Shown piece after piece: positions 4,457 to 48,280 of a stretch of DNA of 64,000 nucleotides. The stretch lies in sequence record NC_031245.1; one strand, 5' to 3'. The stretch's first letter is position 1. Every line of letters starts with the position of its first letter. Under the pieces are notes generated by a model. That model saw only the letters and a list, made by a program, of their open reading frames with translations. It was not told the DNA's origin and made no database searches. The translations under genes were made by a program, and so were the position numbers.

Positions 4457-4485
4457 GGCATCTACATTAGTAGATGCCTTTATTT
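4457..4485 (+). terminator. intrinsic terminator
   Basis: GGCATCTAC-ATTA-GTAGATGCC then TTTATTT. Confidence 0.75.
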
Positions 4486-4863: not shown

Positions 4864-4892
4864 GCTCTATTCAGGTAACCTAAACGTCTATA
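4864..4892 (+). promoter_or_regulatory. phage-specific bipartite promoter motif
   Basis: GCTCTATT-N10-AAACGTCTATA upstream of ssb-ugd-galU-GT-DGC operon. Confidence 0.8.
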
Positions 4893-4941
4893 TCTGTGGA
4901 GAACTGTTTAACCTTGATAATACTAAGAGGAGGGACTACCT

Positions 4942-5355
4942 ATGTTTAATGTAACAATTATTATAGGTCGGTTGACTAAGAATCCAAGTTATAAGTACTT
5001 TGAGAAAAGTAAAAGTCATCGTTGTACTTTCAAGGTAGCTGTACCTAAAGGATGGTTTAGTTCTGAAGCTGACTTTATTCCTATAGTTGTATGGGGTAAA
5101 GATGCTGTCAAGTGTAGAGACAACTTATCGAAAGGTAATTGGATAGCTCTACAAGGTAAGTTGAGTAGTCGGAATTATAAGAATGCTCAAAATATGACAG
5201 TCTATGTAGTCGAAGTCGAAGCTAAAGAAGTATTCTTTATTGATCGTGGCAAGTCCAAGGATGATAAAGGTCCAGACTTAAGTCAGCTACCATTTGCTAA
5301 CTTAGATACTAGTCAATTCAAGTTCGCTCTTGAAGAATCCTCAGACACCGAGTAA
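4942..5355 (+). CDS. ssb: single-stranded DNA-binding protein
   Basis: NVTIIIGRLTKNP, ADFIPIVVWG, LQGKLSSRNY, acidic tail. Confidence 0.92.
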   Translation: MFNVTIIIGRLTKNPSYKYFEKSKSHRCTFKVAVPKGWFSSEADFIPIVVWGKDAVKCRDNLSKGNWIALQGKLSSRNYKNAQNMTVYVVEVEAKEVFFIDRGKSKDDKGPDLSQLPFANLDTSQFKFALEESSDTE

Positions 5356-5378
5356 TTACATCATGAGGAGTGGAACTT

Positions 5379-6689
5379 ATGGATTTAGCTATAATCGGAA
5401 CAGGATTTGTTGGATTGACCTCAGCAGTAGTGTATGCTAGTAAAGGTCATAATGTTATAGGAGTAGATGTAGATCGATTTAAGGTCGACAACCTTAATCA
5501 AGGGATCTGCCTTATTCATGAGGATCAAGTTGGAACATTATTGTATGACGGACTGGAAAAAGGTAATTTAAGTTTTACTACAGACTTAGGAAAAGCTATC
5601 AATAGTTCAGATATCGTAATTATTACAGTAGGTACTCCACCTAGAAAGAACGGTAGTTCTGACCTATCATACTTATTCAAAGCTGTAGACGACGTAGCCA
5701 GTCTAGCTAAGAAGGACTTGATCCTCGTGATTAAGAGTACAGTACCAGTAGGTACTTGTAGAGAAGTAATGTCAATCGTCAAGAAGAGTCCACATAACAT
5801 CGAAGTGGTATCTAATCCAGAATTCTTGGCTGAAGGTACTGCTGTCGCAGATACCTTATCAATGAGTCGACTAGTCGTGGGGTCAGATAGTGAACGAGCA
5901 ATACAAGTTATTCTCGATCTTCATAAAGGTATGACGGATAATTACGTAGTAACTGACCTCGAATCTGCTGAGTTAATCAAGCATGCATCTAATGCATTCC
6001 TAGCTACTAAAATATCATTTATGAATGGTATTGCTAAGCTATGTGAATTCTACGGAGGTAATGTTGACGAGGTAGCTCGTGGGATGGGAATGGATAGTCG
6101 AATCGGTAATCAATTCTTAAAAGCTGGATTAGGATTCGGAGGTTCATGTTTCCCTAAGGATGTATTATCTTTACGTAATATGTCAGATGGGGTTAGCAAT
6201 AACCTGTATACATTGCTATCAGGAGTACTCTCTATCAATAACGAAAACAAGTATGATATAGCATTTAAGCTCGAAGAACTAATGAATAGTCAAGTAGCTG
6301 GACGTAAGGTAGCAGTCCTAGGCTTGTCATTCAAACCGAATACCAATGATATTCGAGAAGCTCCATCCTTAATTATTATAAACAGTCTTTTGGCATTAGG
6401 TGCCGATGTCCATGTCTATGATCCAGCAGTAACTGAAACTGAAATTCGTGATGGCTTAATGGCTAGTGGATACAGAGATCACATTAAATATAGATCTTCG
6501 ATCACTGATGTCCTAGCTGGAGCTGAAGGTGCAGTAATAGTAACAGAGTGGGATCAAATTAAGGAATTAGGAGCTAAAGCTTTTGTCAAGTTGATGAAAA
6601 CTCCTAACGTAGCTGATGGTCGTGGGGTACTCGATCCTAAAGAAGCTAGAGAACAAGGGATCAATCTTTACTCTATAGGTAGAAATTAA
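5379..6689 (+). CDS. ugd: UDP-glucose 6-dehydrogenase
   Basis: GTGFVG Rossmann motif, SNPEFLAEG, IKHASNAFLATKISF, catalytic GFGGSCFPKD, LGLSFKPNTNDIREAP; ATG 5379 fits GAGGAG RBS. Confidence 0.96.
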   Translation: MDLAIIGTGFVGLTSAVVYASKGHNVIGVDVDRFKVDNLNQGICLIHEDQVGTLLYDGLEKGNLSFTTDLGKAINSSDIVIITVGTPPRKNGSSDLSYLFKAVDDVASLAKKDLILVIKSTVPVGTCREVMSIVKKSPHNIEVVSNPEFLAEGTAVADTLSMSRLVVGSDSERAIQVILDLHKGMTDNYVVTDLESAELIKHASNAFLATKISFMNGIAKLCEFYGGNVDEVARGMGMDSRIGNQFLKAGLGFGGSCFPKDVLSLRNMSDGVSNNLYTLLSGVLSINNENKYDIAFKLEELMNSQVAGRKVAVLGLSFKPNTNDIREAPSLIIINSLLALGADVHVYDPAVTETEIRDGLMASGYRDHIKYRSSITDVLAGAEGAVIVTEWDQIKELGAKAFVKLMKTPNVADGRGVLDPKEAREQGINLYSIGRN

Positions 6690-6810
6690 TTAACTAATAC
6701 CAACTTTATAGGGTAATTCATGAGTACTGAACTATCACTTCAGGCTTTATAATTACCAGAAATTACAAGAACTGGTCAACATAAACATTAGGGGGATACA
6801 TCATAAGACA

Positions 6811-7503
6811 ATGGCAACTAGATACTGTAAAAGATGCAACAAAGAGTTAAAACCTACCCAAAAGAAGTACTGCAGTAACTCGTGCAGTGCTAAGGATCGA
6901 GTTATAAGTAAAGAAACTCGTGAGAAAATGAATCAATCAAAAAGAGGTAAGAAGGCTAGTGCTGAAACTCGTGCCAAAATGAGTAGATCTAGAAAAGGTA
7001 AGCCTAAGAGTGATAAACATAAAGCTAGTATAGCTGAAGCTCTTAAAGGTAATACTAACGGTACTGGCAAGAAGGGTATCAAGTTAAGTAAAGAGTCCAG
7101 GTTGCGGATTAGTAAAGCTATCAGCGGAGAAAATCATCCTATGTATGGTAAGTCTCTTAAAGAATCTACCAAGAAGAAATTGAGTGAGGCTAATAGAAGA
7201 AGAGAGAATGATATTGACTTCTACTTCAAGACACTGTTTACAAGTCCATATACTCCTCAGTATCGAATTGATGCACTTAAACACTATGGTCATGTATGTG
7301 AGAATTGCGGAGTGACAGACGTTATCCTAGAGGTTCATCATTTGGATCATGATAGAAGTAATAACGATATCAGTAATCTCTGCGTATTGTGCAGGATATG
7401 TCATCATAAAATTGCACATAAATACGGTAAAATCAAGATTAACACTCAATTTATCAGTCGCATAATTAATAAAAGGGGAGAGATAAACCATGCAAGTACG
7501 TAA
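6811..7503 (+). CDS. free-standing HNH homing endonuclease with NUMOD3-type repeats
   Basis: N-terminal CxxC..YCSxxC, basic repeats (SAETRAKMS, ENHPMYGKS), HNH core CENC..EVHHLDHDRSNNDISNLCVLCRICH. Confidence 0.9.
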   Translation: MATRYCKRCNKELKPTQKKYCSNSCSAKDRVISKETREKMNQSKRGKKASAETRAKMSRSRKGKPKSDKHKASIAEALKGNTNGTGKKGIKLSKESRLRISKAISGENHPMYGKSLKESTKKKLSEANRRRENDIDFYFKTLFTSPYTPQYRIDALKHYGHVCENCGVTDVILEVHHLDHDRSNNDISNLCVLCRICHHKIAHKYGKIKINTQFISRIINKRGEINHAST

Positions 7504-8374
7504 AGCTATTATTCCAGCAGCTGGATTAGGTACTAGATTCCTTCCAGCTACAAAAGCTCAGCCTAAAGAAATGTTATCCTTGATCGATCGACCTGTTATT
7601 GAATATATAGTTAGGGAAATTGTTGAGTCTGGTATCACTGAAATCCTGATAATCACTGGACGTGACAAACGTTCCATTGAGAATCACTTCGACTCTAGTC
7701 CTGAATTAGAGCGTACATTAGAAGAACGAGGTAAACTGGAATTAGTCGAGGAGTTGCGTAAGATTTCAAGTATGGCTAAAATCTATTATACTCGTCAGAA
7801 AGAAGCTCTAGGATTAGGTCATGCAGTCCTTCAAGCTAAAGAGTTTGTCGGTAACGAACCATTTGCAGTATTACTCGGTGATGATATTATGCATTGTAAT
7901 GGTACTCCTTGTTTGAAGCAAATGCTGGATAGATTCGAATTGTTCGAGAATCCAATAATCGCTGCAGAAGAAGTGCCTGATCATATGGTATCTAGCTATG
8001 GTATATTTGCAACTGATGGTGATCCATTGCACGGAGCTCATCAAGTAGTCGATATGGTGGAAAAACCTTCACTGGAGGAAGCTCCATCCAATCTAGCAGT
8101 AATGGGTAGATACATTTTGACTCCAGATATCTTTCCTATATTGGAAACTATCCCTACTGGAGCAGGTGGAGAAATTCAACTAACTGATGCTATTAAAGAG
8201 TTGATACATTTCCGAGAAGTCTATGCTTACAAGTTTGAAGGTAAAAGATACGATGCTGGTAACAAAGTTGAATTTATCAAAGCTAGTATTGAACTAGGGC
8301 TAGAACGGAATGATATTGCTCCACTCCTAAAAGAGTATATCATTGAGTTAGGACTTAAATTATCTAAGGAGTGA
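7490..8374 (+). CDS. galU: UTP--glucose-1-phosphate uridylyltransferase
   Basis: KAIIPAAGLGTRFLPATKAQPKEML, EALGLGHAV, VEKP, GEIQLTDA. Confidence 0.97.
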   Translation: MQVRKAIIPAAGLGTRFLPATKAQPKEMLSLIDRPVIEYIVREIVESGITEILIITGRDKRSIENHFDSSPELERTLEERGKLELVEELRKISSMAKIYYTRQKEALGLGHAVLQAKEFVGNEPFAVLLGDDIMHCNGTPCLKQMLDRFELFENPIIAAEEVPDHMVSSYGIFATDGDPLHGAHQVVDMVEKPSLEEAPSNLAVMGRYILTPDIFPILETIPTGAGGEIQLTDAIKELIHFREVYAYKFEGKRYDAGNKVEFIKASIELGLERNDIAPLLKEYIIELGLKLSKE

Positions 8375-8378
8375 ATTT

Positions 8379-9563
8379 ATGAGGATATTGGTCACTATGC
8401 CAACCACTCATCATATGATTCCTACGCATCCTAGAGGTGGATTTGAAATTTCAGTAGCTCAAAGTGCTATTGCATTAAAAGAACTTGGACATGAAGTGAC
8501 GATTCTAGTTAACAAAGAAGGGTCGTTCACTCCTCCAGGGATAAAGCATTTGCAGTTCGGGAGGTCAATTAGAATACCTCCTAAGATATTCAAAGAGAAA
8601 TTCCTGGAGGACTACGATGTCATAGTTCATCATGCAGGAGTTCCTACGTACGAGAAAGACTCGTACCTCAAGTGGATCAATGACAAGAATCACCGACCTA
8701 AGAAACCATTCATCATAGTCTTTCATGATCCTCATATGTTAAGAGGGGATTCAAGTAAACCAAATAGTATGGAGAACTTTGACTCACCTCTTAATGAATT
8801 CAGACATATGGCTAACAGAGGATTAATAGTTGGAGGAGTAAGTAAGTCGCATACACAATGGATGGCTCAGTCCAAAGAATTAGGTTCAAATATGATGTAC
8901 CTCTATAATCCTACACTGGATTATGGATGGTCGGATCGAATAGTGACTAAACCTCGTCGTCTCATCATCGTTAGTCGGTATGCTACGTACAAGAACCTTA
9001 AAGTTTCAGTTAAAGCTGCAGGTGAGAGTGGTATACCAACTGACGTAATTATTAGTGGTATCTACGAGTCAGATAACGAATACCGTAATACTCCAGATAG
9101 AGAAGAGTCAACTAAGTCCTTCGAACTAAAGGTATTACCGTTATTTCGTAAGTATCCTAACTTGACATTGTATACTAATAAAACTAATCAATTTGTAATC
9201 GATAAGATGAAACATGCTGATTTGATGATATCTGCAAGTACAGGCGAATCCTTCGGTAGAATTTATGCCGAATCACTGTCAGTAGGTACTCCTCTACTAG
9301 TACCTGATTTCGAGATTAGTCGGGAGATCATCCGAGATTGTGGTGAATACTTTACATTCAGTGGTTCACGCAAATCAATGGTGAAAGAAATCCTGACCAA
9401 AATTGAATCAGCTTCATCTATCCCTAGAGACCGATGTCGTGAGTTATGGCACAACAATTATTCTCCAGTAAAAGTCGGACTAGCCTATGAAGAAGTAATA
9501 AATGCTTCAATCAATAATTGGGATAAAGGAGGAGTACTCCATGACATTTATAGTAACGTTTAG
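8379..9563 (+). CDS. GT4-like glycosyltransferase (GT-B fold)
   Basis: GGFE..LKELGHEVTIL N-terminus; ESFGRIYAESLSVGTP (EX7E motif). Confidence 0.88.
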   Translation: MRILVTMPTTHHMIPTHPRGGFEISVAQSAIALKELGHEVTILVNKEGSFTPPGIKHLQFGRSIRIPPKIFKEKFLEDYDVIVHHAGVPTYEKDSYLKWINDKNHRPKKPFIIVFHDPHMLRGDSSKPNSMENFDSPLNEFRHMANRGLIVGGVSKSHTQWMAQSKELGSNMMYLYNPTLDYGWSDRIVTKPRRLIIVSRYATYKNLKVSVKAAGESGIPTDVIISGIYESDNEYRNTPDREESTKSFELKVLPLFRKYPNLTLYTNKTNQFVIDKMKHADLMISASTGESFGRIYAESLSVGTPLLVPDFEISREIIRDCGEYFTFSGSRKSMVKEILTKIESASSIPRDRCRELWHNNYSPVKVGLAYEEVINASINNWDKGGVLHDIYSNV

Positions 9564-10092
9564 TTTGCTCATTCTTATCGTAGTTACACTTTATCTTCTA
9601 AGCAAGAATCGTAAATTGAATCAAATGGTATCACTGGATCATTTGACTAACACCTATAACAGACGATACCTCAATAAGTATAGAAAATATAAGGATCAAC
9701 TTCTCAGCGTACTCGTAATCGATATAGATCATTTCAAGTCGGTCAATGATACCTATGGTCATCCTGCTGGAGATCAGATACTATCTGAACTGGCTGGATT
9801 GTTGAAGAGAATAGTGAGAGAAGAGGACTCAGTAGTTCGAATAGGTGGCGAAGAATTCTTGGTGATTCTTAAGAATACCCCTATCGACATTGCTGAGTCC
9901 CTTGCCGTCCAAATTCTACACGCTATCGGTAACCATAGATTCACTTATAACGACAAAGAGATTAGGATTACTGTTAGTATAGGTGTATCAGAGTCCTACA
10001 CTGATATCGATAGAGCAATCAGTGAAGCAGACCTCAATCTGTACCACGCTAAAGAGTCTGGTAGAAATCAAATCAGAGTACACTGTAATTGA
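9541..10092 (+). CDS. membrane-anchored diguanylate cyclase (GGDEF domain)
   Basis: N-terminal TM helix; DHLTNTYNRR, DIDHFKSVNDTYGHPAGD, RxxD I-site (REED), GGEEF, LYHAKESGRN; ATG 9541 after AAGGAGGAG. Confidence 0.95.
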   Translation: MTFIVTFSLLILIVVTLYLLSKNRKLNQMVSLDHLTNTYNRRYLNKYRKYKDQLLSVLVIDIDHFKSVNDTYGHPAGDQILSELAGLLKRIVREEDSVVRIGGEEFLVILKNTPIDIAESLAVQILHAIGNHRFTYNDKEIRITVSIGVSESYTDIDRAISEADLNLYHAKESGRNQIRVHCN

Positions 10093-10110
10093 AGTTCTCA
10101 AACGTCTATA
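10082..10110 (+). promoter_or_regulatory. phage-specific bipartite promoter motif
   Basis: ACTGTAAT-N10-AAACGTCTATA-CTTG-TGAAG. Confidence 0.75.
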
Positions 10111-10141
10111 CTTGTGAAGACATCGAAGGAGGATTACTAAT

Positions 10142-11209
10142 ATGGGAATTTATTACGTAGCTCGACATAAGTACCATGTGGATGCGATGTATCCTATTTG
10201 GGAAGGTACTGGTGGAGAGTGGATATTTGTACATCGAGAAGTTCACGGTTATAAAGGACTGGAACATTCTAAGAAGAAGTTCTCCGATCTTACTGAAAAG
10301 GATCTGGTAATAGCTAACTGTCCACTGCCTGAAGCATCCTCAGCTAAGTACAAGTTTGTCAGATTAGAGCTAATGCAACATAGTCCAGGTCAACGTACTA
10401 ATATGCGTGAACGTAAATGCGGTATGATTGATTACGGAATTGTGACAACTGACTCTAACTGGGACTTGGACTACGATCTATCACCTACGTACAAGCGTAT
10501 GCGTGATGAAGGTCGTATCTTCCAAGCAGGTGCGTGGTTCAAGAAGTACTACCTTGATAGAATGGAATCCAAGTCTGATGGCAATACAATTCTCCTAGCT
10601 CCAGCTTCATCAAATACTGCAGGAGGATTCTTGAATGTAGTTGGTGAACAAATTATTGAGAAGTTGTTATCTGAAGGGTACAAAGTCATCCTGATGCCTC
10701 ATGAACTTGACGTCTATAACTTACCTGGACGTGGAGTAATCGAGAGACTACGAGAAAGAATGGCTAATGGTGAACTCGAAGGACTAGAGCTACTAGACAG
10801 CAAGAATACTGGTATCGATAAGATCGAATATGCATTCACTAAATCCGATATATGTATCTCGGACTTCTCAGGTACGTCTTATGAGTTTGCGTATCTAAAT
10901 AAACCAGTTATCCATTTAAAGAATACATCAAAAGATAGGTGGAATCCTAAGTATAAACATGGTAACTACCACCATACAGTAGGTCCACTTGTGGATTTCG
11001 AGAAATGTAACTTCCTACCTACAGTTCAGTTTGCTATGACTGCTCCTGAAGAATTTATCCAAGTATCTAATGAAGAGTGGGATAGATTAGAAGCACTTCA
11101 CGATACAGTAGGATTAAGGGAAGTGGATCCGATCACACCTTCAATCAAGATTATCTTAGACTGCTATGACAGATTGCAACAAGGTAATCTACCTAAGAAG
11201 GATTATTAA
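10142..11209 (+). CDS. TagF-like (CDP-glycerol glycerophosphotransferase family) phosphotransferase
   Basis: TILLAPAS, VILMPHE, SDICISDFSGTSYEFAYLNKPVI match family motifs ILYAPTWR / LHP / DILITDYSS..FD..LxKP. Confidence 0.75.
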   Translation: MGIYYVARHKYHVDAMYPIWEGTGGEWIFVHREVHGYKGLEHSKKKFSDLTEKDLVIANCPLPEASSAKYKFVRLELMQHSPGQRTNMRERKCGMIDYGIVTTDSNWDLDYDLSPTYKRMRDEGRIFQAGAWFKKYYLDRMESKSDGNTILLAPASSNTAGGFLNVVGEQIIEKLLSEGYKVILMPHELDVYNLPGRGVIERLRERMANGELEGLELLDSKNTGIDKIEYAFTKSDICISDFSGTSYEFAYLNKPVIHLKNTSKDRWNPKYKHGNYHHTVGPLVDFEKCNFLPTVQFAMTAPEEFIQVSNEEWDRLEALHDTVGLREVDPITPSIKIILDCYDRLQQGNLPKKDY

Positions 11210-11215
11210 TTAGAA

Positions 11216-11244
11216 GCTGTATTAAGGTGTCATAGACGTTTATA
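11216..11244 (+). promoter_or_regulatory. phage-specific bipartite promoter motif
   Basis: GCTGTATT-N10-AGACGTTTATA. Confidence 0.8.
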
Positions 11245-11276
11245 GTCTTGAGGTTGTTAAACGAAGGAGGATACTT

Positions 11277-12428
11277 ATGAAAGTCGGAATTATCAACAAT
11301 ATGAATGTTCCAAAAGGTGGAACAGCTACTTATTTCAGAAACTATTTAATCCCATTGCTACTACATGCTGGAGCAGAGGTGACTTTCATTTCTTACAAGG
11401 GACTAGGGGATTACTGGAACGATAAACTTCCAGAAGACGTCAAAGTCCTGAACGTTAGTCATGAAAACTTTGATGAGCACATCGCTGAATTAAATGGATT
11501 AGACGTTATCCACACTGTAATCTTCCATTCTTATGTTGGTAAGAAAGGTGAACATATTGAACTATGGGACGATTTAACTAAGTTAAATGTACCTTTAGTA
11601 ACAACTGTCCATGCAGTTACACAATTAATGAGATGGTCTCATGACCCATCGGTACTAAACACTAAATCATTCTTAGCTCACCCTAACTTAGCTAAAGTTA
11701 TTCAGTTCCGTTATGGATATTACGACTTGCTGATGGGTAAATTTGCTAAGAAATATAAACCTGAATTCAAGTTACCTAACCGTGAGGATTACATAGTACA
11801 TCATCCATACGTAGGGTACGTGGATCGTAGTAACTTAATCCCTTGGGAAGAACGTCCAAATAACATTAGTTATGCAGGTAGATTCTCTGGAGCTAAACGA
11901 GGATACGTACTAATGGATTCATACGAATACATTAAGTCATTCGACAAAATGGTAGTTGCTACAAACTACGACGACTGTTCGCACTGGGATCGTATGAAAC
12001 TCAATACACTTATTGAGCAAGTAGGTGACAAGCTTGACTTGATCAAGGAGTTCGAACCTACTGATGTTCCTAAAATTGCTAATAAGGCTAAGTTCGTAGC
12101 ATTCCCAGTAGCTTGGGAAGATATTGAATTCCCTAACGAATGGATGTACCAAGAAATGGTATCATGCGGAGTGATTCCTATCACTACGGATAAGATGATC
12201 AAGCGTGTACCTGATGAGCTTAAGGACGTACTCGTATTAACTCACGCTCCTACAACTAAGCCAGTTGACTATGACGCTATCGTAGGTCAGTATTCTCAAG
12301 AGCAATTAAAAGAGATGTCTGATAAATTAGTGGACTATGCTAATCGCAACTGGCATGATATCGACTTAGCTTCTAAGCACCTAGTTGGTGTTTACGAACA
12401 AGCTATTGATAAAGGAGTGACCAAATAA
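11277..12428 (+). CDS. GT-B glycosyltransferase, phage DNA alpha-glucosyltransferase-like
   Basis: MKVGII..GGTATY, SYAGRFSGAKRG, EWMYQEMVSCGVIPI. Confidence 0.65.
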   Translation: MKVGIINNMNVPKGGTATYFRNYLIPLLLHAGAEVTFISYKGLGDYWNDKLPEDVKVLNVSHENFDEHIAELNGLDVIHTVIFHSYVGKKGEHIELWDDLTKLNVPLVTTVHAVTQLMRWSHDPSVLNTKSFLAHPNLAKVIQFRYGYYDLLMGKFAKKYKPEFKLPNREDYIVHHPYVGYVDRSNLIPWEERPNNISYAGRFSGAKRGYVLMDSYEYIKSFDKMVVATNYDDCSHWDRMKLNTLIEQVGDKLDLIKEFEPTDVPKIANKAKFVAFPVAWEDIEFPNEWMYQEMVSCGVIPITTDKMIKRVPDELKDVLVLTHAPTTKPVDYDAIVGQYSQEQLKEMSDKLVDYANRNWHDIDLASKHLVGVYEQAIDKGVTK

Positions 12429-13570
12429 TGAGAATCGGATTCTTAACTTTCCATAATGATTACTCTTCCAACAAAGTTGGAGGAGTAGTTTCTGGACCAC
12501 TTTACATGGTACAGAACTTACGTCAAGTAATTGGTGCTGAAGTAGACTTCTTAGTAGTTGCAGATTCTACTAAGAGAGGGAAAATAAGAAATAAAGCATA
12601 TGAGGAAGATGTTAGTTCATTCCTCGGATTCTTTGAAGGTACTAAGGATCACGAATCTGACGTAGAGCTACTCAATTCTTACGACCTACTCATGTTCATG
12701 ACTCCAGGTAAAACGTATGAGAAGTTCAAAGAAGAGAAAGTAGGTCAGTATAAGAAGGTTCTTGATAAGCTAACAGTTCCATTTGGATTCATAGTTAATG
12801 AAGAACGTGACCGTGATATGTATCTGTATTATACAGAGTTCACGGATCATCCTGGATGCAAGTACATTCTTTACAATTCTGAAGATATGGCTAAGGATTT
12901 CGAGGACTTCAATCAAGGTGGTAAGGTGGTAGCTGAGTTCCAGTTTATGACTCCACTCGAACCTCTAAATAAGATTCTTGAGAAAGCTAGCAATAAAACT
13001 TCCTCAGTAATCAATACAGGTCGTTGGGTTAATCGTAAGCGTATCGTGGAGTACGTAGAGCTTGCTCCTAAGTTCGCTGAAGTAGGAATTCAACCTTACT
13101 TAGCAGGAGCTAAACAGAATCCATTCTACTCTAAACAAGTAGACGAGATGCTAGAAACTCAGTACTTCCAAGATAAAACTTACCAAGATTACTTAACTTA
13201 TGTAGGAGCCTACAAACCTACTAAAGAAGAATTGGATGGACTGCTTGATGATAAGATGTTCCATTACAATTTCGTATTCCTACGTACTAAACGCAAGATG
13301 TATAATCGACTTGAGATAGCTACGATGGAAGCATTCAATAGAGGATGTCTACCAATCGTATGTTCAGAGACTTCACCTGACTGGGTTGAAGGAGCATTGA
13401 GCTTAAGTCGGGATCAACTCGAAGAGATTCCTTCTATAGTAGCAGGTATCTCCGATGCAGAAAGAATTGATAGACTTACTATATTCTACAAGTCTATTCG
13501 AGATAACGTCGAAGCTAAGTATAAAGATATCTTTAATAACTTGTTCGAGAGCTTAGGTATTAATAAATAA
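12428..13570 (+). CDS. GT-B glycosyltransferase, T4 AGT-like
   Basis: LLNSYDLLMF, YKKVLDKL, TGRWVNRK, RLEIATMEAFNRGCLPIV parallel T4 AGT motifs as recalled. Confidence 0.65.
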   Translation: MRIGFLTFHNDYSSNKVGGVVSGPLYMVQNLRQVIGAEVDFLVVADSTKRGKIRNKAYEEDVSSFLGFFEGTKDHESDVELLNSYDLLMFMTPGKTYEKFKEEKVGQYKKVLDKLTVPFGFIVNEERDRDMYLYYTEFTDHPGCKYILYNSEDMAKDFEDFNQGGKVVAEFQFMTPLEPLNKILEKASNKTSSVINTGRWVNRKRIVEYVELAPKFAEVGIQPYLAGAKQNPFYSKQVDEMLETQYFQDKTYQDYLTYVGAYKPTKEELDGLLDDKMFHYNFVFLRTKRKMYNRLEIATMEAFNRGCLPIVCSETSPDWVEGALSLSRDQLEEIPSIVAGISDAERIDRLTIFYKSIRDNVEAKYKDIFNNLFESLGINK

Positions 13571-13574
13571 GGGT

Positions 13575-13976
13575 GTGACTCAATTGACCAGACTATCAAG
13601 AAATAACAGCGAGACACGAGAAATGATCAAGTCCTTGTCAACATTGACAGGACTTGACCCTAAGGCTATTGAAACTGTATTAGTTGCACAAGAATTATAC
13701 ATTCAGCATCAGGTGTATTTGAAATACAAAGCTAATCCTGAAGAACCACCTGAGATTGAATTGCCTTACTTGGGGTCACTCAAGATGTTCCCAATCAATT
13801 ATAAGAACCGTAGTGATGTAACAGACAATGCTGCTGCAAGAGTAAAGTTCTACCCTGAGAATCAATTTAAGCGTAGGTTACGTAAATCGATGTATCAGGA
13901 GAAGAACTTCTTGATAGAGCATTCACTCGAATCCTTCAAGGATCATTTTGTCCAGAAATTCAAATCACTCATTTAA
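13575..13976 (+). CDS. HU/IHF-like DNA-binding protein
   Basis: MIKSLSTLTGLDPKAIETVL..EIELPYLGSLK pattern. Confidence 0.55.
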   Translation: MTQLTRLSRNNSETREMIKSLSTLTGLDPKAIETVLVAQELYIQHQVYLKYKANPEEPPEIELPYLGSLKMFPINYKNRSDVTDNAAARVKFYPENQFKRRLRKSMYQEKNFLIEHSLESFKDHFVQKFKSLI

Positions 13977-13989
13977 GGAGCTATCGTTT

Positions 13990-15420
13990 ATGTCTATAGT
14001 TAGAATGTATGATATACGAGGTATTTATGGTAAGGAGTTAACTGATGACTACGCCTATAACTTAGGTATTCGCCTAGTTAACTACCTTAATTCTGTATCA
14101 CAAAGTCCGACACTAGAAGTATTAGTTGGGTACGATGCACGTCGCAGTAGTCCAGCTCTGCATGATAAATTGGTAGAAGCTATTAGTAAGGCAGGAGCTA
14201 ACGTAGTCTCTGTAGGTATGACTACATCAGGAGTTATCTCTACTCTTGATAAAATGGAGAAACCTGACGCTTCGGTTATGATTACTGCTAGCCATAATCC
14301 TCCTGAATATAATGGATTTAAGATAATTGTTAATGGTCAAGCTCTCTATGGAGACCTATTAGCAGAAGTTGCTAATTACTCAGATATAGTTTTCTCAGGA
14401 GTAGATAGAGGATCAATCGGTAGCTACCCTGAGCTCATCAATAACTTGTACGTACCTGCTATCGTACGTGAATTCAAAAATAGACAGTCTGAAATCGATA
14501 TAATCAATACTTTGGAGTTAGCTATTGACTGTGCTAACGGCTCTGCAGGACCAGTACTTCAAGATGTACTCGACCGACTGGGTCTCAATATAGAGCTTAC
14601 CCTTAAGGAACCTGACGGGTCATTTCCAGTTCATCCACCAGATCCTAGTAAAGAGGATAACTGGGTTCATATTAAATCCCATTACCTAGATACTAAAATG
14701 CTGTTCATGATTGATGGTGATGGTGATCGTGTAGGTGTCATGACTAATGAAGGGACTTTGCTAAAAGGAGATAAAGTACTTTCTATCATAGCTGAGGCAA
14801 GCTCCTCACGTGCAATGGACAATACGATTCTCCTTGATGTTAAGTCCTCCGAGCTAGTTCGTGAGCATATTAAGTCATTAGGCTATCGTGTTAGGTACCA
14901 TCAAACAGGTCATTCCTTGATCAAGAAGTCAATGAATGGTGACAAATTGATAGCAATGGCTGGAGAAGAGTCAGGTCATCTCTATATTAGAGATGAGTTC
15001 TTTGGAGTGGATGATGCAGTCTATAACCTCCTAAGATTCCTATTTGATTCAGTTAAGTTAGGTGCTCATGCTAATCTGGAGTCCTACCTAAACTCAAGGA
15101 TGCCACGAACTTATACTCTTAGTCTTAAGTTTAATGTTTCAGATAACTTAAAGCCTAAGGTAATGGAGAGAGTTGCTCAAAAGGTAGTAGACTACGCTGA
15201 AAGTCTAGCAGGTGAAGTTATAACGATTGATGGAGTTAGAGCTAACTTCCATGAAGGGTGGTTCATCTTACGTCAATCAAATACCGAACCTTATATTGGA
15301 GCTAACATTGAGACTTATGAAGAGGATAAACTAGGTGATATCCGAAAGGTTCTATCAGATCTAGTAACTGAAGCTATTGCCAAGGAGGAAGAATTAAGTG
15401 GTCCAGTTAAATCCAAGTAA
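13990..15420 (+). CDS. phosphoglucomutase/phosphomannomutase
   Basis: YDIRG, ITASHNPPEYNGFK phosphoserine loop, DGDGDR metal loop, GEESGH, FILRQSNTEP; ATG 13990. Confidence 0.95.
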   Translation: MSIVRMYDIRGIYGKELTDDYAYNLGIRLVNYLNSVSQSPTLEVLVGYDARRSSPALHDKLVEAISKAGANVVSVGMTTSGVISTLDKMEKPDASVMITASHNPPEYNGFKIIVNGQALYGDLLAEVANYSDIVFSGVDRGSIGSYPELINNLYVPAIVREFKNRQSEIDIINTLELAIDCANGSAGPVLQDVLDRLGLNIELTLKEPDGSFPVHPPDPSKEDNWVHIKSHYLDTKMLFMIDGDGDRVGVMTNEGTLLKGDKVLSIIAEASSSRAMDNTILLDVKSSELVREHIKSLGYRVRYHQTGHSLIKKSMNGDKLIAMAGEESGHLYIRDEFFGVDDAVYNLLRFLFDSVKLGAHANLESYLNSRMPRTYTLSLKFNVSDNLKPKVMERVAQKVVDYAESLAGEVITIDGVRANFHEGWFILRQSNTEPYIGANIETYEEDKLGDIRKVLSDLVTEAIAKEEELSGPVKSK

Positions 15421-15712
15421 TTTTAATGAAGTTGTTGAGTCAGGGAAAGTCCTAGCAGTAAAATTCGGAGCACCATGGTGCGGTACTTGTAAGTCACTTG
15501 AAGCTCAATTAGATCAAATCATCGAGTCTGATAAGTACCAAGTTGCTGAAGTAAATGTAGAAGAGTCTGCAGATATTGCTGCTCAATACGGAATTATGAG
15601 TATTCCAGCATTACTATTTTTCAAGGATGGTCAGAAAGTGGATGAAGCATCCTTCGTAGGATTTCGTCCAGCTGAGTACATTCAGGAGACTCTTGACTCT
15701 CTATCCAAGTAA
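15398..15712 (+). CDS. trxA: thioredoxin
   Basis: FGAPWCGTCK, YGIMSIPALLFFKDG. Confidence 0.92.
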   Translation: MVQLNPSNFNEVVESGKVLAVKFGAPWCGTCKSLEAQLDQIIESDKYQVAEVNVEESADIAAQYGIMSIPALLFFKDGQKVDEASFVGFRPAEYIQETLDSLSK

Positions 15713-15717
15713 GCCAG

Positions 15718-15754
15718 ATGACCTAGGTAATTATACCTAGGTCATTTTTATTTT
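15718..15754 (+). terminator. intrinsic terminator
   Basis: 12-bp stem ATGACCTAGGTA/TACCTAGGTCAT then TTTTATTTT. Confidence 0.85.
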
Positions 15755-24760: not shown

Positions 24761-25114
24761 ATGGAGAAGAATAGAAGAGATGCATTTAGACTGGAGAACT
24801 TACAGATTTCTTGTAAGTACGGCAACTGTGCTGAAGGAATTACTAACCTAGTAGACATCAGTGCAACTGGTGCTAGACTAGCTGGCAAGATAGGTGATGT
24901 AGGGAGTCCAATAACTATAACTTTCAGAATTATGGATAAAGCATTCATTAGAACTGGAACTATAGTTTGGGTGGATAATCAGTACACTGCAATGAAATTC
25001 TCTAAGACTACTCCTAGAGAAGAATCCGAACTGCTACGTAATATCTTCCAAGAAGATATCAAAAGGAAGTATGAGTCAGAAAATAATCAAGAAAAGTTAG
25101 CTCAAAACGAGTAA
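24761..25114 (+). CDS. stand-alone PilZ-domain c-di-GMP receptor
   Basis: RDAFR (RxxxR) and DISATG (DxSxxG) followed by a beta-barrel pattern (GTIVWV..AMKF). Confidence 0.85.
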   Translation: MEKNRRDAFRLENLQISCKYGNCAEGITNLVDISATGARLAGKIGDVGSPITITFRIMDKAFIRTGTIVWVDNQYTAMKFSKTTPREESELLRNIFQEDIKRKYESENNQEKLAQNE

Positions 25115-47845: not shown

Positions 47846-48280
47846 ATGAATAAAAGACCACCTTTTAGTAAAGTATTTATGGATGAAGCGGAGCTATGGT
47901 CAAGTCGTTCGACTTGTACAAGATTATCGGTAGGTGCAGTTATAGTTAGGGACAACCGTACCGTAGCTCAAGGGTACAACGGTAGCATAGCAGGTCATCC
48001 ACATTGCAACGAAGTTGGTGACTTAATGTATGAGAACGGTTGTAAGCGTACGATTCATGCTGAAATGAACGCATTAATGATGTGTGCTAAATATGGAATC
48101 CCAACTGCAGGAACTGTATTATATGTAACACATTATCCTTGTCCAGATTGTATGAAACATATAAATCAAGCAGGTATCAAAGAAGTAGTTTTTAAACATG
48201 ATTATAAGCATCGTTATGAGAATAACTTCCATGAAGGGATTAAATTAACTAAATACACGGAGGAAATTGAGAATGCATAA
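47846..48280 (+). CDS. dCMP deaminase (ComEB-like)
   Basis: RSTCTRLSVGAVIV, GYNG, HAEMNAL, PCPDC. Confidence 0.92.
   Translation: MNKRPPFSKVFMDEAELWSSRSTCTRLSVGAVIVRDNRTVAQGYNGSIAGHPHCNEVGDLMYENGCKRTIHAEMNALMMCAKYGIPTAGTVLYVTHYPCPDCMKHINQAGIKEVVFKHDYKHRYENNFHEGIKLTKYTEEIENA

Follow-up and report, generated by a model that had tools for sequence, protein, structure and literature searches.

Candidate enzymes for sugar and sugar-phosphate decoration of DNA in a conserved gene cluster of Bacillus phage SP-15

We analyzed a 64,000-nucleotide stretch of sequence record NC_031245.1 (the window), focusing on a cluster of sugar-activation and sugar-transfer genes at positions 5379-15420. We propose, with a probability of roughly 0.6, that this module of Bacillus phage SP-15 decorates 5-(4,5-dihydroxypentyl)uracil (DHPU), with the TagF-fold protein gp151 transferring glucuronic acid 1-phosphate (GlcA-1-phosphate) from UDP-glucuronic acid (UDP-GlcA) and gp153 glucosylating the DNA. 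The whole window is 100% identical to positions 124001-188000 of KT624200.1 (= NC_031245.1), with window base 1 at record base 124001 and the cluster at record 129379-139420. Megablast of the cluster interval against KT624200.1 returned 100% identity over 10042 bases, and the annotation agrees with the open reading frames (ORFs): the boundaries of the interval coincide with the start of SP15_146 and the end of SP15_155, and all of it is a single plus-strand gene block. An earlier reading of the sequence alone, made without database searches, had named SP-15 as the closest known case; the window is SP-15 itself, and the comparison with SP-15 proteins proposed there becomes a self-comparison.

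According to Ehrlich & Ehrlich (1981), as cited in PMC5977210, SP-15 DNA carries glucose and phosphoglucuronate on DHPU, which substitutes for thymine. The side chain, with a predicted mass of 488 Da, makes this one of the largest base modifications reported from nature. Kropinski et al. (2018, Viruses 10:217, PMC5977210) proposed that genes 146-155 make glucosyl and glucuronolactone-1-phosphate groups on DHPU. In Table 2 they give Ugd, GalU, two glycosyltransferases, a 'CDP-glycerol glycerophosphotransferase' and a mutase; they suggested that gp151, gp148 and gp146 build a 'phospho-esterified dihydroxypentyl chain', left gp153 and gp154 hypothetical, and described SP-15 as a genomic orphan. 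Both the cluster and a proposed role for it in DNA decoration are therefore already published and not new, and our overall interpretation of the identical sequence agrees with theirs. To it we add an AGT-like gp153, a TagF-fold gp151 with proposed GlcA-1-phosphate transfer, three further lineages, and the recognition of HNH and GGDEF genes as insertions. Later papers on YerA41, Carin-5 (PMC12686479, PMC13697223) and SP15-like polymerases repeat the chemistry and assign no transferase, and a full-text literature search found no paper assigning the phosphodiester step of SP-15 DNA.

Sugar-nucleotide supply and candidate transferases

Three enzymes of the cluster account for both sugar donors. 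gp155 (13990..15420) is a phosphoglucomutase/phosphomannomutase (glucose 6-phosphate to glucose 1-phosphate) with all four PGM_PMM domains and the TASHNP, DGDGDR and GEESGH motifs. gp148 (7490..8374) is GalU, which forms UDP-glucose from glucose 1-phosphate and UTP; it scores 367 bits against a TIGR01099 cutoff of 327 and carries the GLGTRFLPATK motif. gp146 (5379..6689) is Ugd, the UDP-glucose 6-dehydrogenase that converts UDP-glucose to UDP-GlcA, with three Pfam UDPG_MGDP_dh domains (E 1.7e-54, 2e-30 and 1.8e-29), 408 bits against a cutoff of 190 for NCBIfam NDP-sugar dehydrogenase, and an intact catalytic cysteine motif, GGSCFPKD. Domains and catalytic motifs thus bear out the full route that had been read from the sequence, from glucose 6-phosphate through glucose 1-phosphate and UDP-glucose to UDP-GlcA. 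Judged by these features the route is complete and catalytically intact-looking, and UDP-glucose and UDP-GlcA can be made by phage enzymes. Because the chemistry of SP-15 DNA needs exactly glucose and GlcA-1-phosphate, matching the donors from the cluster, we favor a role in DNA decoration.

The phosphate-linked sugar points to gp151 (10142..11209, 355 aa). By profile and model it is a divergent, minimal, anchor-less member of the TagF superfamily, an assignment made because of profile membership, motif alignment with TarL and Foldseek matches to TagF. A set of 5.8 billion clustered proteins holds only two close relatives of gp151, and a profile of three gp151-family sequences retrieved 76 remote relatives from 1.84 billion representatives. 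Among 30 aligned family members, 25 match Pfam Glyphos_transf (best 2.7e-35), and H80, P186-H187 and D241 are invariant, H80 being placed by alignment and not by structure. Neither the gp151 sequence nor the three-sequence profile found anything significant among PDB sequences, and gp151 has no NCBIfam match; the 30-sequence profile reaches Staphylococcus aureus TarL in the PDB sequences at E 1.1e-10. There RPHP lies opposite KMHP and SDxxISDxSGxxxEFA opposite TDLLISDYSSLIYEYA, with the HP and SDxS motifs matched (TDLLISDYSS in TarL). The AlphaFold2 (AF2) model of gp151 (pLDDT 82.5, pTM 0.86) has TagF as its top 12 Foldseek matches in the PDB (E 2e-10 to 1.5e-7, TM 0.53-0.59). A search of BFVD with the same model gave no other viral protein as a close TagF-like match, and BLAST against a phage collection gave, beyond LIS04, one partial match, at 28%, in a fecal phage contig. 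The TagF-like transferase predicted by the sequence-only reading is thereby confirmed by profile and predicted structure.

With TagF, TagB and TarL (PF04464; PDB 3l7i, 8va1), gp151 shares the fold, the conserved His/HP and SDxS motifs and, in the chemistry proposed here, the attack of a hydroxyl on the beta-phosphate of an NDP-activated donor with release of NMP. It differs in being far shorter than the 583-aa TarL chain, in having no hydrophobic segment and in being phage-encoded beside Ugd and GalU. Its proposed donor is UDP-GlcA and its proposed acceptor a modified nucleobase, whereas the TagF family combines a CDP-alditol donor with a membrane-associated teichoic-acid acceptor.

For the glucose, the candidate is gp153 (12428..13570), proposed as a DHPU-DNA glucosyltransferase. 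Its AF2 model (pLDDT 81.8, pTM 0.84) has the GT-B glycosyltransferase fold and lies nearest to T4 DNA alpha-glucosyltransferase (AGT), which fills Foldseek ranks 1-8 (E 5e-12 to 4e-10, TM 0.62-0.69); the generic GT4 enzymes BshA, MshA and OtsA rank after it (E 2e-9 or weaker, TM 0.52-0.57). The sequence weakly matches PHROG 2888 'alpha-glucosyltransferase' at E 1.1e-4, a score that no single stretch passes alone, and has no match in Pfam, NCBIfam or PDB sequences by direct search, nor in PDB sequences by profile. Like T4 AGT (PDB 1xv5, 1y6f, 1y8z), gp153 is a phage-encoded, soluble GT-B protein in a DNA-modification context, with a UDP-sugar as its proposed donor. The proposed acceptor differs, being a side-chain hydroxyl of DHPU instead of the 5-hydroxymethylcytosine used by AGT.

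Two more transferases are less closely tied to a reported linkage. gp149 (8379..9563) is an accessory GT4-type GT-B glycosyltransferase, missing from LIS04 and L015 (see below), with a PF00534 Glycos_transf_1 match at E 4.1e-10 (39.9 bits against a cutoff of 26.4) and a PF13439 score of 23.5 bits that stays under its cutoff. gp152 (11277..12428) belongs to an orphan family and is probably a GT-B glycosyltransferase, as suggested by model alignment: the BFVD model of a 383-aa SP-15 'glycosyl transferase' (A0A127AWG9, equated with gp152 solely by its length) can be superposed on the gp151 model with E 1.7e-4 and TM 0.48. Six members of the gp152 family scanned against Pfam and PHROG at relaxed thresholds gave nothing, an hhalign comparison of the gp153 and gp152 families was not significant (E 0.03, probability 1.7%), and pairwise BLASTP detected no relationship among gp151, gp152 and gp153. 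The claim of four transferases therefore stands for the GT4 protein gp149, the TagF-like gp151 and the GT-B protein gp153, and lacks a family match for gp152 as GT-B.

The hydropathy scan indicates that all transferases of the cluster are soluble: gp149, gp151, gp152 and gp153 have no predicted transmembrane helix, the maximum 19-residue Kyte-Doolittle hydropathy being at most 1.07. This upholds the claim that they have no membrane anchor, and so does the gene content for the claimed absence of export functions. No Wzx, Wzy or exporter is found among all ORFs of at least 60 aa in the interval, and no flippase, Wzy-type polymerase, chain-length regulator, exporter or priming enzyme is annotated elsewhere in the SP-15 genome.

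Promoter class and related lineages

A promoter-like motif ties the cluster to the DNA-metabolism genes. ACGTYTATA occurs 24 times in the window, always on the plus strand, against 1.9 copies expected, and none of 100 shuffles reached 24; the extended consensus is GCTnnATT-N11-ACGTYTATAnTnnTGAAG. One copy lies 5' of SSB and Ugd (4864..4905, core ACGTCTATA at 4884-4892), and further cores lie 5' of gp151 (10102..10110) and gp152 (11236..11244). Copies also precede the DNA ligase gene (2546) and the gene for dCMP deaminase, a source of dUMP (47808); the deaminase that had been placed at 47846 is the annotated SP15_219 (gp219, 47846..48280, plus strand). Motif copies of the cluster sit in intergenic spacers, with one (10710) inside the gp151 ORF. 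Genome-wide, SP-15 has 61 plus-strand and 3 minus-strand copies (64 in total), the minus-strand ones only in the lone minus-strand gene block; motif strand always equals gene orientation, and almost no copies fall in the structural module (20-76 kb). The motif that the sequence-only reading had seen in both gene groups is thus common to them and strongly over-represented. We infer that the block and the genes for replication and nucleotide metabolism are transcribed together, from promoters of a class specific to the phage.

Host sigma-70 consensus sites number 28 in the block versus 40 in shuffles, with no host-type promoter signal evident. The SP-15 record annotates only sigma-70-like promoters and not the ACGTYTATA motif, and the word 'promoter' does not occur in PMC5977210. 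SP-15 encodes an ECF-like sigma factor, gp78 (record 76605-77303), which would be the factor reading the motif; the CGT-containing -10-like element and gp78 together suggest a phage sigma regulon. The unit is bounded on the plus strand by intrinsic terminators. The upstream one, after the DNA ligase gene (4457..4478), has a 9-bp stem and a T tail and is annotated at record 128457-128485; the strong one that closes the block (15716..15747) has a 14-bp stem and is likewise annotated. On the same strand, the first gene behind the promoter motif is gp145, encoding SSB (4942..5355), which adjoins Ugd in all four lineages described below (tblastn synteny), and the last before the terminator is gp156, a thioredoxin gene (15398..15712) that also follows the mutase gene in L008.

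Searches for homologues, with neighborhoods covered up to 10 kb on each side, revealed three further lineages with the module (L008/L009, LIS04 and L015), and SP-15 is no longer an orphan. Logan assemblies L004, L008 and L009 are close relatives at 70-85% protein identity, with the order ligase, MazE-like, hypothetical, SSB, Ugd, GalU, GT4, gp151, gp152, gp153, gp154, mutase and thioredoxin, and without HNH and GGDEF genes. In Listeria phage LIS04, whose genome announcement does not mention DNA modification, Ugd, GalU, gp151, gp152, gp153 and gp154 are followed directly by a helicase, and GT4, mutase, thioredoxin and GGDEF genes are missing. The more distant L015 (Logan ERR12380602, 6902-14671) has SSB, Ugd, a cupin-type glucose-6-phosphate isomerase, GalU, a gp151 homologue (27% identity), a GT2, a 292-aa GT-A-like protein, a gp154 homologue (67%), a mutase and a helicase. 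Its two GT-A-type proteins, one a Pfam GT2 and the 292-aa one with IVVPTNN and ADDNF, stand where gp152 and gp153 would be. The cupin-type isomerase inside this cluster corresponds to the distant gene 11 in SP-15. Ugd, GalU, gp151 and gp154 are thus kept in all four lineages (SP-15, L008/L009, LIS04 and L015) and the glycosyltransferase slots are swapped, being filled by the GT-B proteins gp152 and gp153 with or without GT4, or by two GT-A-type proteins.

Better conserved even than Ugd is gp154 (13584..13976), a 130-aa protein without a known fold that lies between the transferases and the mutase or helicase in all four lineages. It is 67-68% identical throughout (homologues at L008 10100-10492, L002 12381-12773 and L015 12850-13242), compared with 53-70% for Ugd and, in L015, 27% for gp151. 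This conservation implies a tightly constrained partner or substrate, and we regard gp154 as a probable, highly conserved accessory protein and a presumably essential partner. The sequence-only reading had listed an HU-like protein in the cluster, which could only be gp154. We rejected this identification as unproven: the Pfam HU-HIG match has E 0.13 (12.7 bits against a cutoff of 26.2), an hhalign comparison with HU, IHF and TF1 gave E 0.064 and a probability of 0.9% (with HU, IHF and TF1 sequences that may hold errors), and direct and profile searches of PDB sequences gave no match.

Outside these lineages, members of the gp152 and gp153 families turn up in examined stretches that lack Ugd. 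A gp153 homologue with 37% identity lies in L005 (ENA ERZ27249496 NODE_1, 230 kb) among genes for a 5-hydroxymethyl-deoxyuridine (5-hmdU) DNA kinase (Pfam 4.8e-51), a thymidylate synthase (TS)-like protein and a dCMP deaminase. Homologues of gp152 were found only in LIS04, the Logan SP-15-like contigs and Streptococcus phage vB_SagM-GXN1 (PQ819873, L003 17-10176). The GXN1 stretch encodes a 1871-aa family A polymerase fused to uracil-DNA glycosylase (UDG) and containing an intein, three unannotated ORFs and two tandem gp152 paralogues, which lie 2 kb downstream of this SP15-type polymerase; the GenBank record annotates 40 features only. UDG-fused SP15-type family A polymerases mark phages with hypermodified thymidine, which suggests that the Streptococcus agalactiae phage GXN1 may also carry glycosylated thymidine. 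Apart from LIS04, GXN1 and the partial gp151 match, the phage collection held no BLAST-detectable homologue of gp151-gp154. These neighborhoods tie gp152 and gp153 to DNA-base modification generally, and gp151 to UDP-GlcA particularly.

The L005 contig is of jumbo-phage size, and its block is a putative, undescribed thymidine-hypermodification block. At 5312-13352 it reads 5-hmdU DNA kinase, TS-like, SpoVG, dCMP deaminase, a 470-aa weakly TAGT-like protein (E 5e-4), the gp153 homologue, GT4 and UDP-galactopyranose mutase, a gene content that hints at a galactofuranose-containing DNA modification.

Proposed chemistry and its rivals

In the mechanism that we propose, gp155, gp148 and gp146 would supply UDP-glucose and UDP-GlcA in the infected cell. 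One DHPU hydroxyl would attack the beta-phosphate of UDP-GlcA on gp151, UMP would leave and GlcA-1-phosphate would stay in a phosphodiester, as TagF does with CDP-glycerol, and gp153 would transfer glucose from UDP-glucose to the other hydroxyl of DHPU already in DNA. gp152, with the accessory gp149 in SP-15, may add or extend further sugars or serve alternative acceptors, and gp154 would act as a conserved accessory protein. A bolder form of this proposal, advanced tentatively and at somewhat short of even odds, is that gp151, a minimal and soluble protein with the TagF fold, was recruited from teichoic-acid synthesis and builds the phosphodiester on DHPU from UDP-GlcA with release of UMP, as the first nucleic-acid-directed sugar-1-phosphate transferase known, and that the surplus enzymes gp152 and gp149 mean a side chain larger or more heterogeneous than the 1981 structure. 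The sequence-only reading had likewise suggested that four transferases might build a more elaborate decoration; LIS04 lacks the GT4, and L015 has two GT-A-type proteins in place of gp152 and gp153.

Several observations weigh against this proposal. To our knowledge, every characterized TagF-family enzyme uses a CDP-alditol donor and not a UDP-sugar. Taken alone, gp151 falls just under the Pfam threshold (21.7 bits against a Glyphos_transf, PF04464, gathering score of 22.1), over residues 227-258 only. A model of gp153 that resembles AGT (TM about 0.65-0.69, with 14-16% identity) is not enough to make DNA its acceptor; gp152 has no match in Pfam, PHROG, NCBIfam or, by sequence and by profile, PDB, and a fold is undemonstrated for gp152 and gp154. 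Three or four transferases stand against only two reported linkages. Finally, adjacent DHPU residues never occur in SP-15 DNA, for which PMC5977210 suggests steric or charge exclusion during replication; this would fit sugar addition to nucleotides before polymerization and not to DNA.

The last point bears on an alternative that we consider unlikely, though it deserves more weight than the others: glucose and GlcA-1-phosphate would be added to dDHPU mono- or triphosphate, and the decorated nucleotide would be incorporated by the SP15-type polymerase. Consistent with it, synthesis of DHPU was reported to take place at the level of nucleoside triphosphates (Walker & Mandel 1978, as given in a citing paper), the literature sets SP15-like polymerases apart as a subfamily marked by large insertions, and no homologue of the 5-hmdU DNA kinase (HMUDK) was detected in SP-15: a tblastn search with the L005 protein against all five pieces of the genome gave nothing better than E 0.42, at BLAST-level sensitivity. 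Against nucleotide-level addition stand the gp153 model, nearest to a DNA-acting, base-flipping glucosyltransferase, and the position of gp153 homologues beside a post-replicative 5-hmdU DNA kinase; moreover, PMC5977210 gives the timing of sugar addition as undetermined. A second variant, for which we see only a slim chance, keeps DNA decoration and divides the phosphodiester into two steps, with a kinase phosphorylating the DHPU hydroxyl, gp152, gp149 or gp153 then adding GlcA from UDP-GlcA, and gp151 having another task, for instance alditol-phosphate transfer or action on a different acceptor. In the wording of the Carin-5 paper the side chain of SP-15 DNA is 'phosphorylated and then glucuronated', HMUDK-type thymidine hypermodification as a rule passes through phosphorylated intermediates (PMC5889632), and the surplus of glycosyltransferases would find a use. 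However, the conserved block has no kinase, the HMUDK search of SP-15 was negative, gp151 co-occurs with Ugd in 4/4 lineages, and the accounts of SP-15 DNA consulted here mention no glycerol or ribitol phosphate. With the 5-HMUDK and aGPT-Pplase pathways (Lee et al. 2018, PMC5889632) and the glycosylated-T phages YerA41 and Carin-5 (PMC12686479, PMC13697223), SP-15 shares a T-derived hypermodification with linker, phosphate and sugars, an SP15-type UDG-fused polymerase and glycosyltransferase blocks near replication genes; the HMUDK pathways differ in their kinase, which had no detected counterpart in SP-15.

Readings that place the sugars elsewhere than on DNA are disfavored because membrane machinery is missing and because of the promoter class and the links to AGT and HMUDK. 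Remodeling of the host cell wall, with teichoic or teichuronic acid made or altered for example in superinfection exclusion or receptor masking, is improbable, although Ugd finds its best NCBIfam match in TuaD (E 1.8e-129, under cutoff), gp151 falls within the wall-teichoic-acid polymerase superfamily and similarity to teichuronic-acid genes was noted in PMC5977210. Wall teichoic and teichuronic acid clusters have a membrane-embedded priming transferase, a flippase or ABC exporter and a membrane-associated polymerase, whereas none of these is in the interval or annotated elsewhere in SP-15; the transferases are anchor-less, the TagF-family chains matched by gp151 are far longer than gp151 itself, the block belongs to the replication module and has replication-class promoters, and gp153 is AGT-like with homologues linked to HMUDK. 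Glycosylation of virion or other phage proteins, which GT4 and other GT-B enzymes perform in some systems and which GtfA- and SdgA-type proteins among the weak matches might recall, is the least probable of all, since the promoter class is nearly missing from the structural module, no link to structural genes appears and the known DNA chemistry already explains the need for both donors. The proposal that sugar decoration acts on phage DNA, also made in the sequence-only reading, is in turn supported by the identity with SP-15, the published assignment of genes 146-155, the supply of UDP-glucose and UDP-GlcA, the AGT-like gp153 model, the neighborhoods of gp152 and gp153 homologues, the anchor-less transferases and promoter sharing.

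Inserted genes, side-chain candidates and significance

Two genes in the interval had been overlooked by the sequence-only reading. gp147 (6811..7503), between Ugd and GalU, encodes a free-standing HNH/NUMOD3 homing endonuclease (Pfam NUMOD3 1.5e-17, HNH_3), and its ORF overlaps the GalU start by 14 bases; it is missing at this site in L008/L009, LIS04 and L015. gp150 (9541..10092) encodes a membrane-anchored GGDEF diguanylate cyclase (Pfam GGDEF 5e-38) with an intact GGEEF motif, an RxxD I-site at canonical spacing and an N-terminal hydropathy of 2.65, the only clear helix in the scan; it is missing from the cluster in all relatives examined. Gene content thus marks the HNH and GGDEF genes as later, SP-15-specific insertions outside the pathway, and gp150 probably has nothing to do with DNA decoration. 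SP-15 also encodes, at 24761-25114, the stand-alone PilZ protein SP15_170 (Pfam E 2.4e-7) with RxxxR (RRDAFR) and DxSxxG (DISATG) motifs, and gp150 and SP15_170 look like a phage-borne cyclic di-GMP (c-di-GMP) signal and receptor pair; PMC5977210 mentions neither PilZ nor c-di-GMP.

With regard to the base itself, tblastn against the five pieces of the whole SP-15 genome found no ThyA-like or TAGT-like gene. Just upstream of the window (record 113729-119044, L010) cluster gp127 (316 aa, with a nucleoside 2-deoxyribosyltransferase domain), gp129 (an SDR protein), gp130 (413 aa, weakly ThyX-like at E 8e-6) and gp131 (691 aa, without a Pfam match), which by domain content and position are obvious candidates for synthesis of the dihydroxypentyl side chain.

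The enzymes that attach the two sugars of SP-15 DNA have been undefined since the 1981 structure; gp151 is now a candidate for the sugar-phosphodiester and gp153 for DNA glucosylation, and four lineages define a conserved core of Ugd, GalU, gp151 and gp154. If the proposal is true, the writing of sugar-phosphates onto DNA by a soluble enzyme would be an activity new to biochemistry, with a possible use in DNA labeling.

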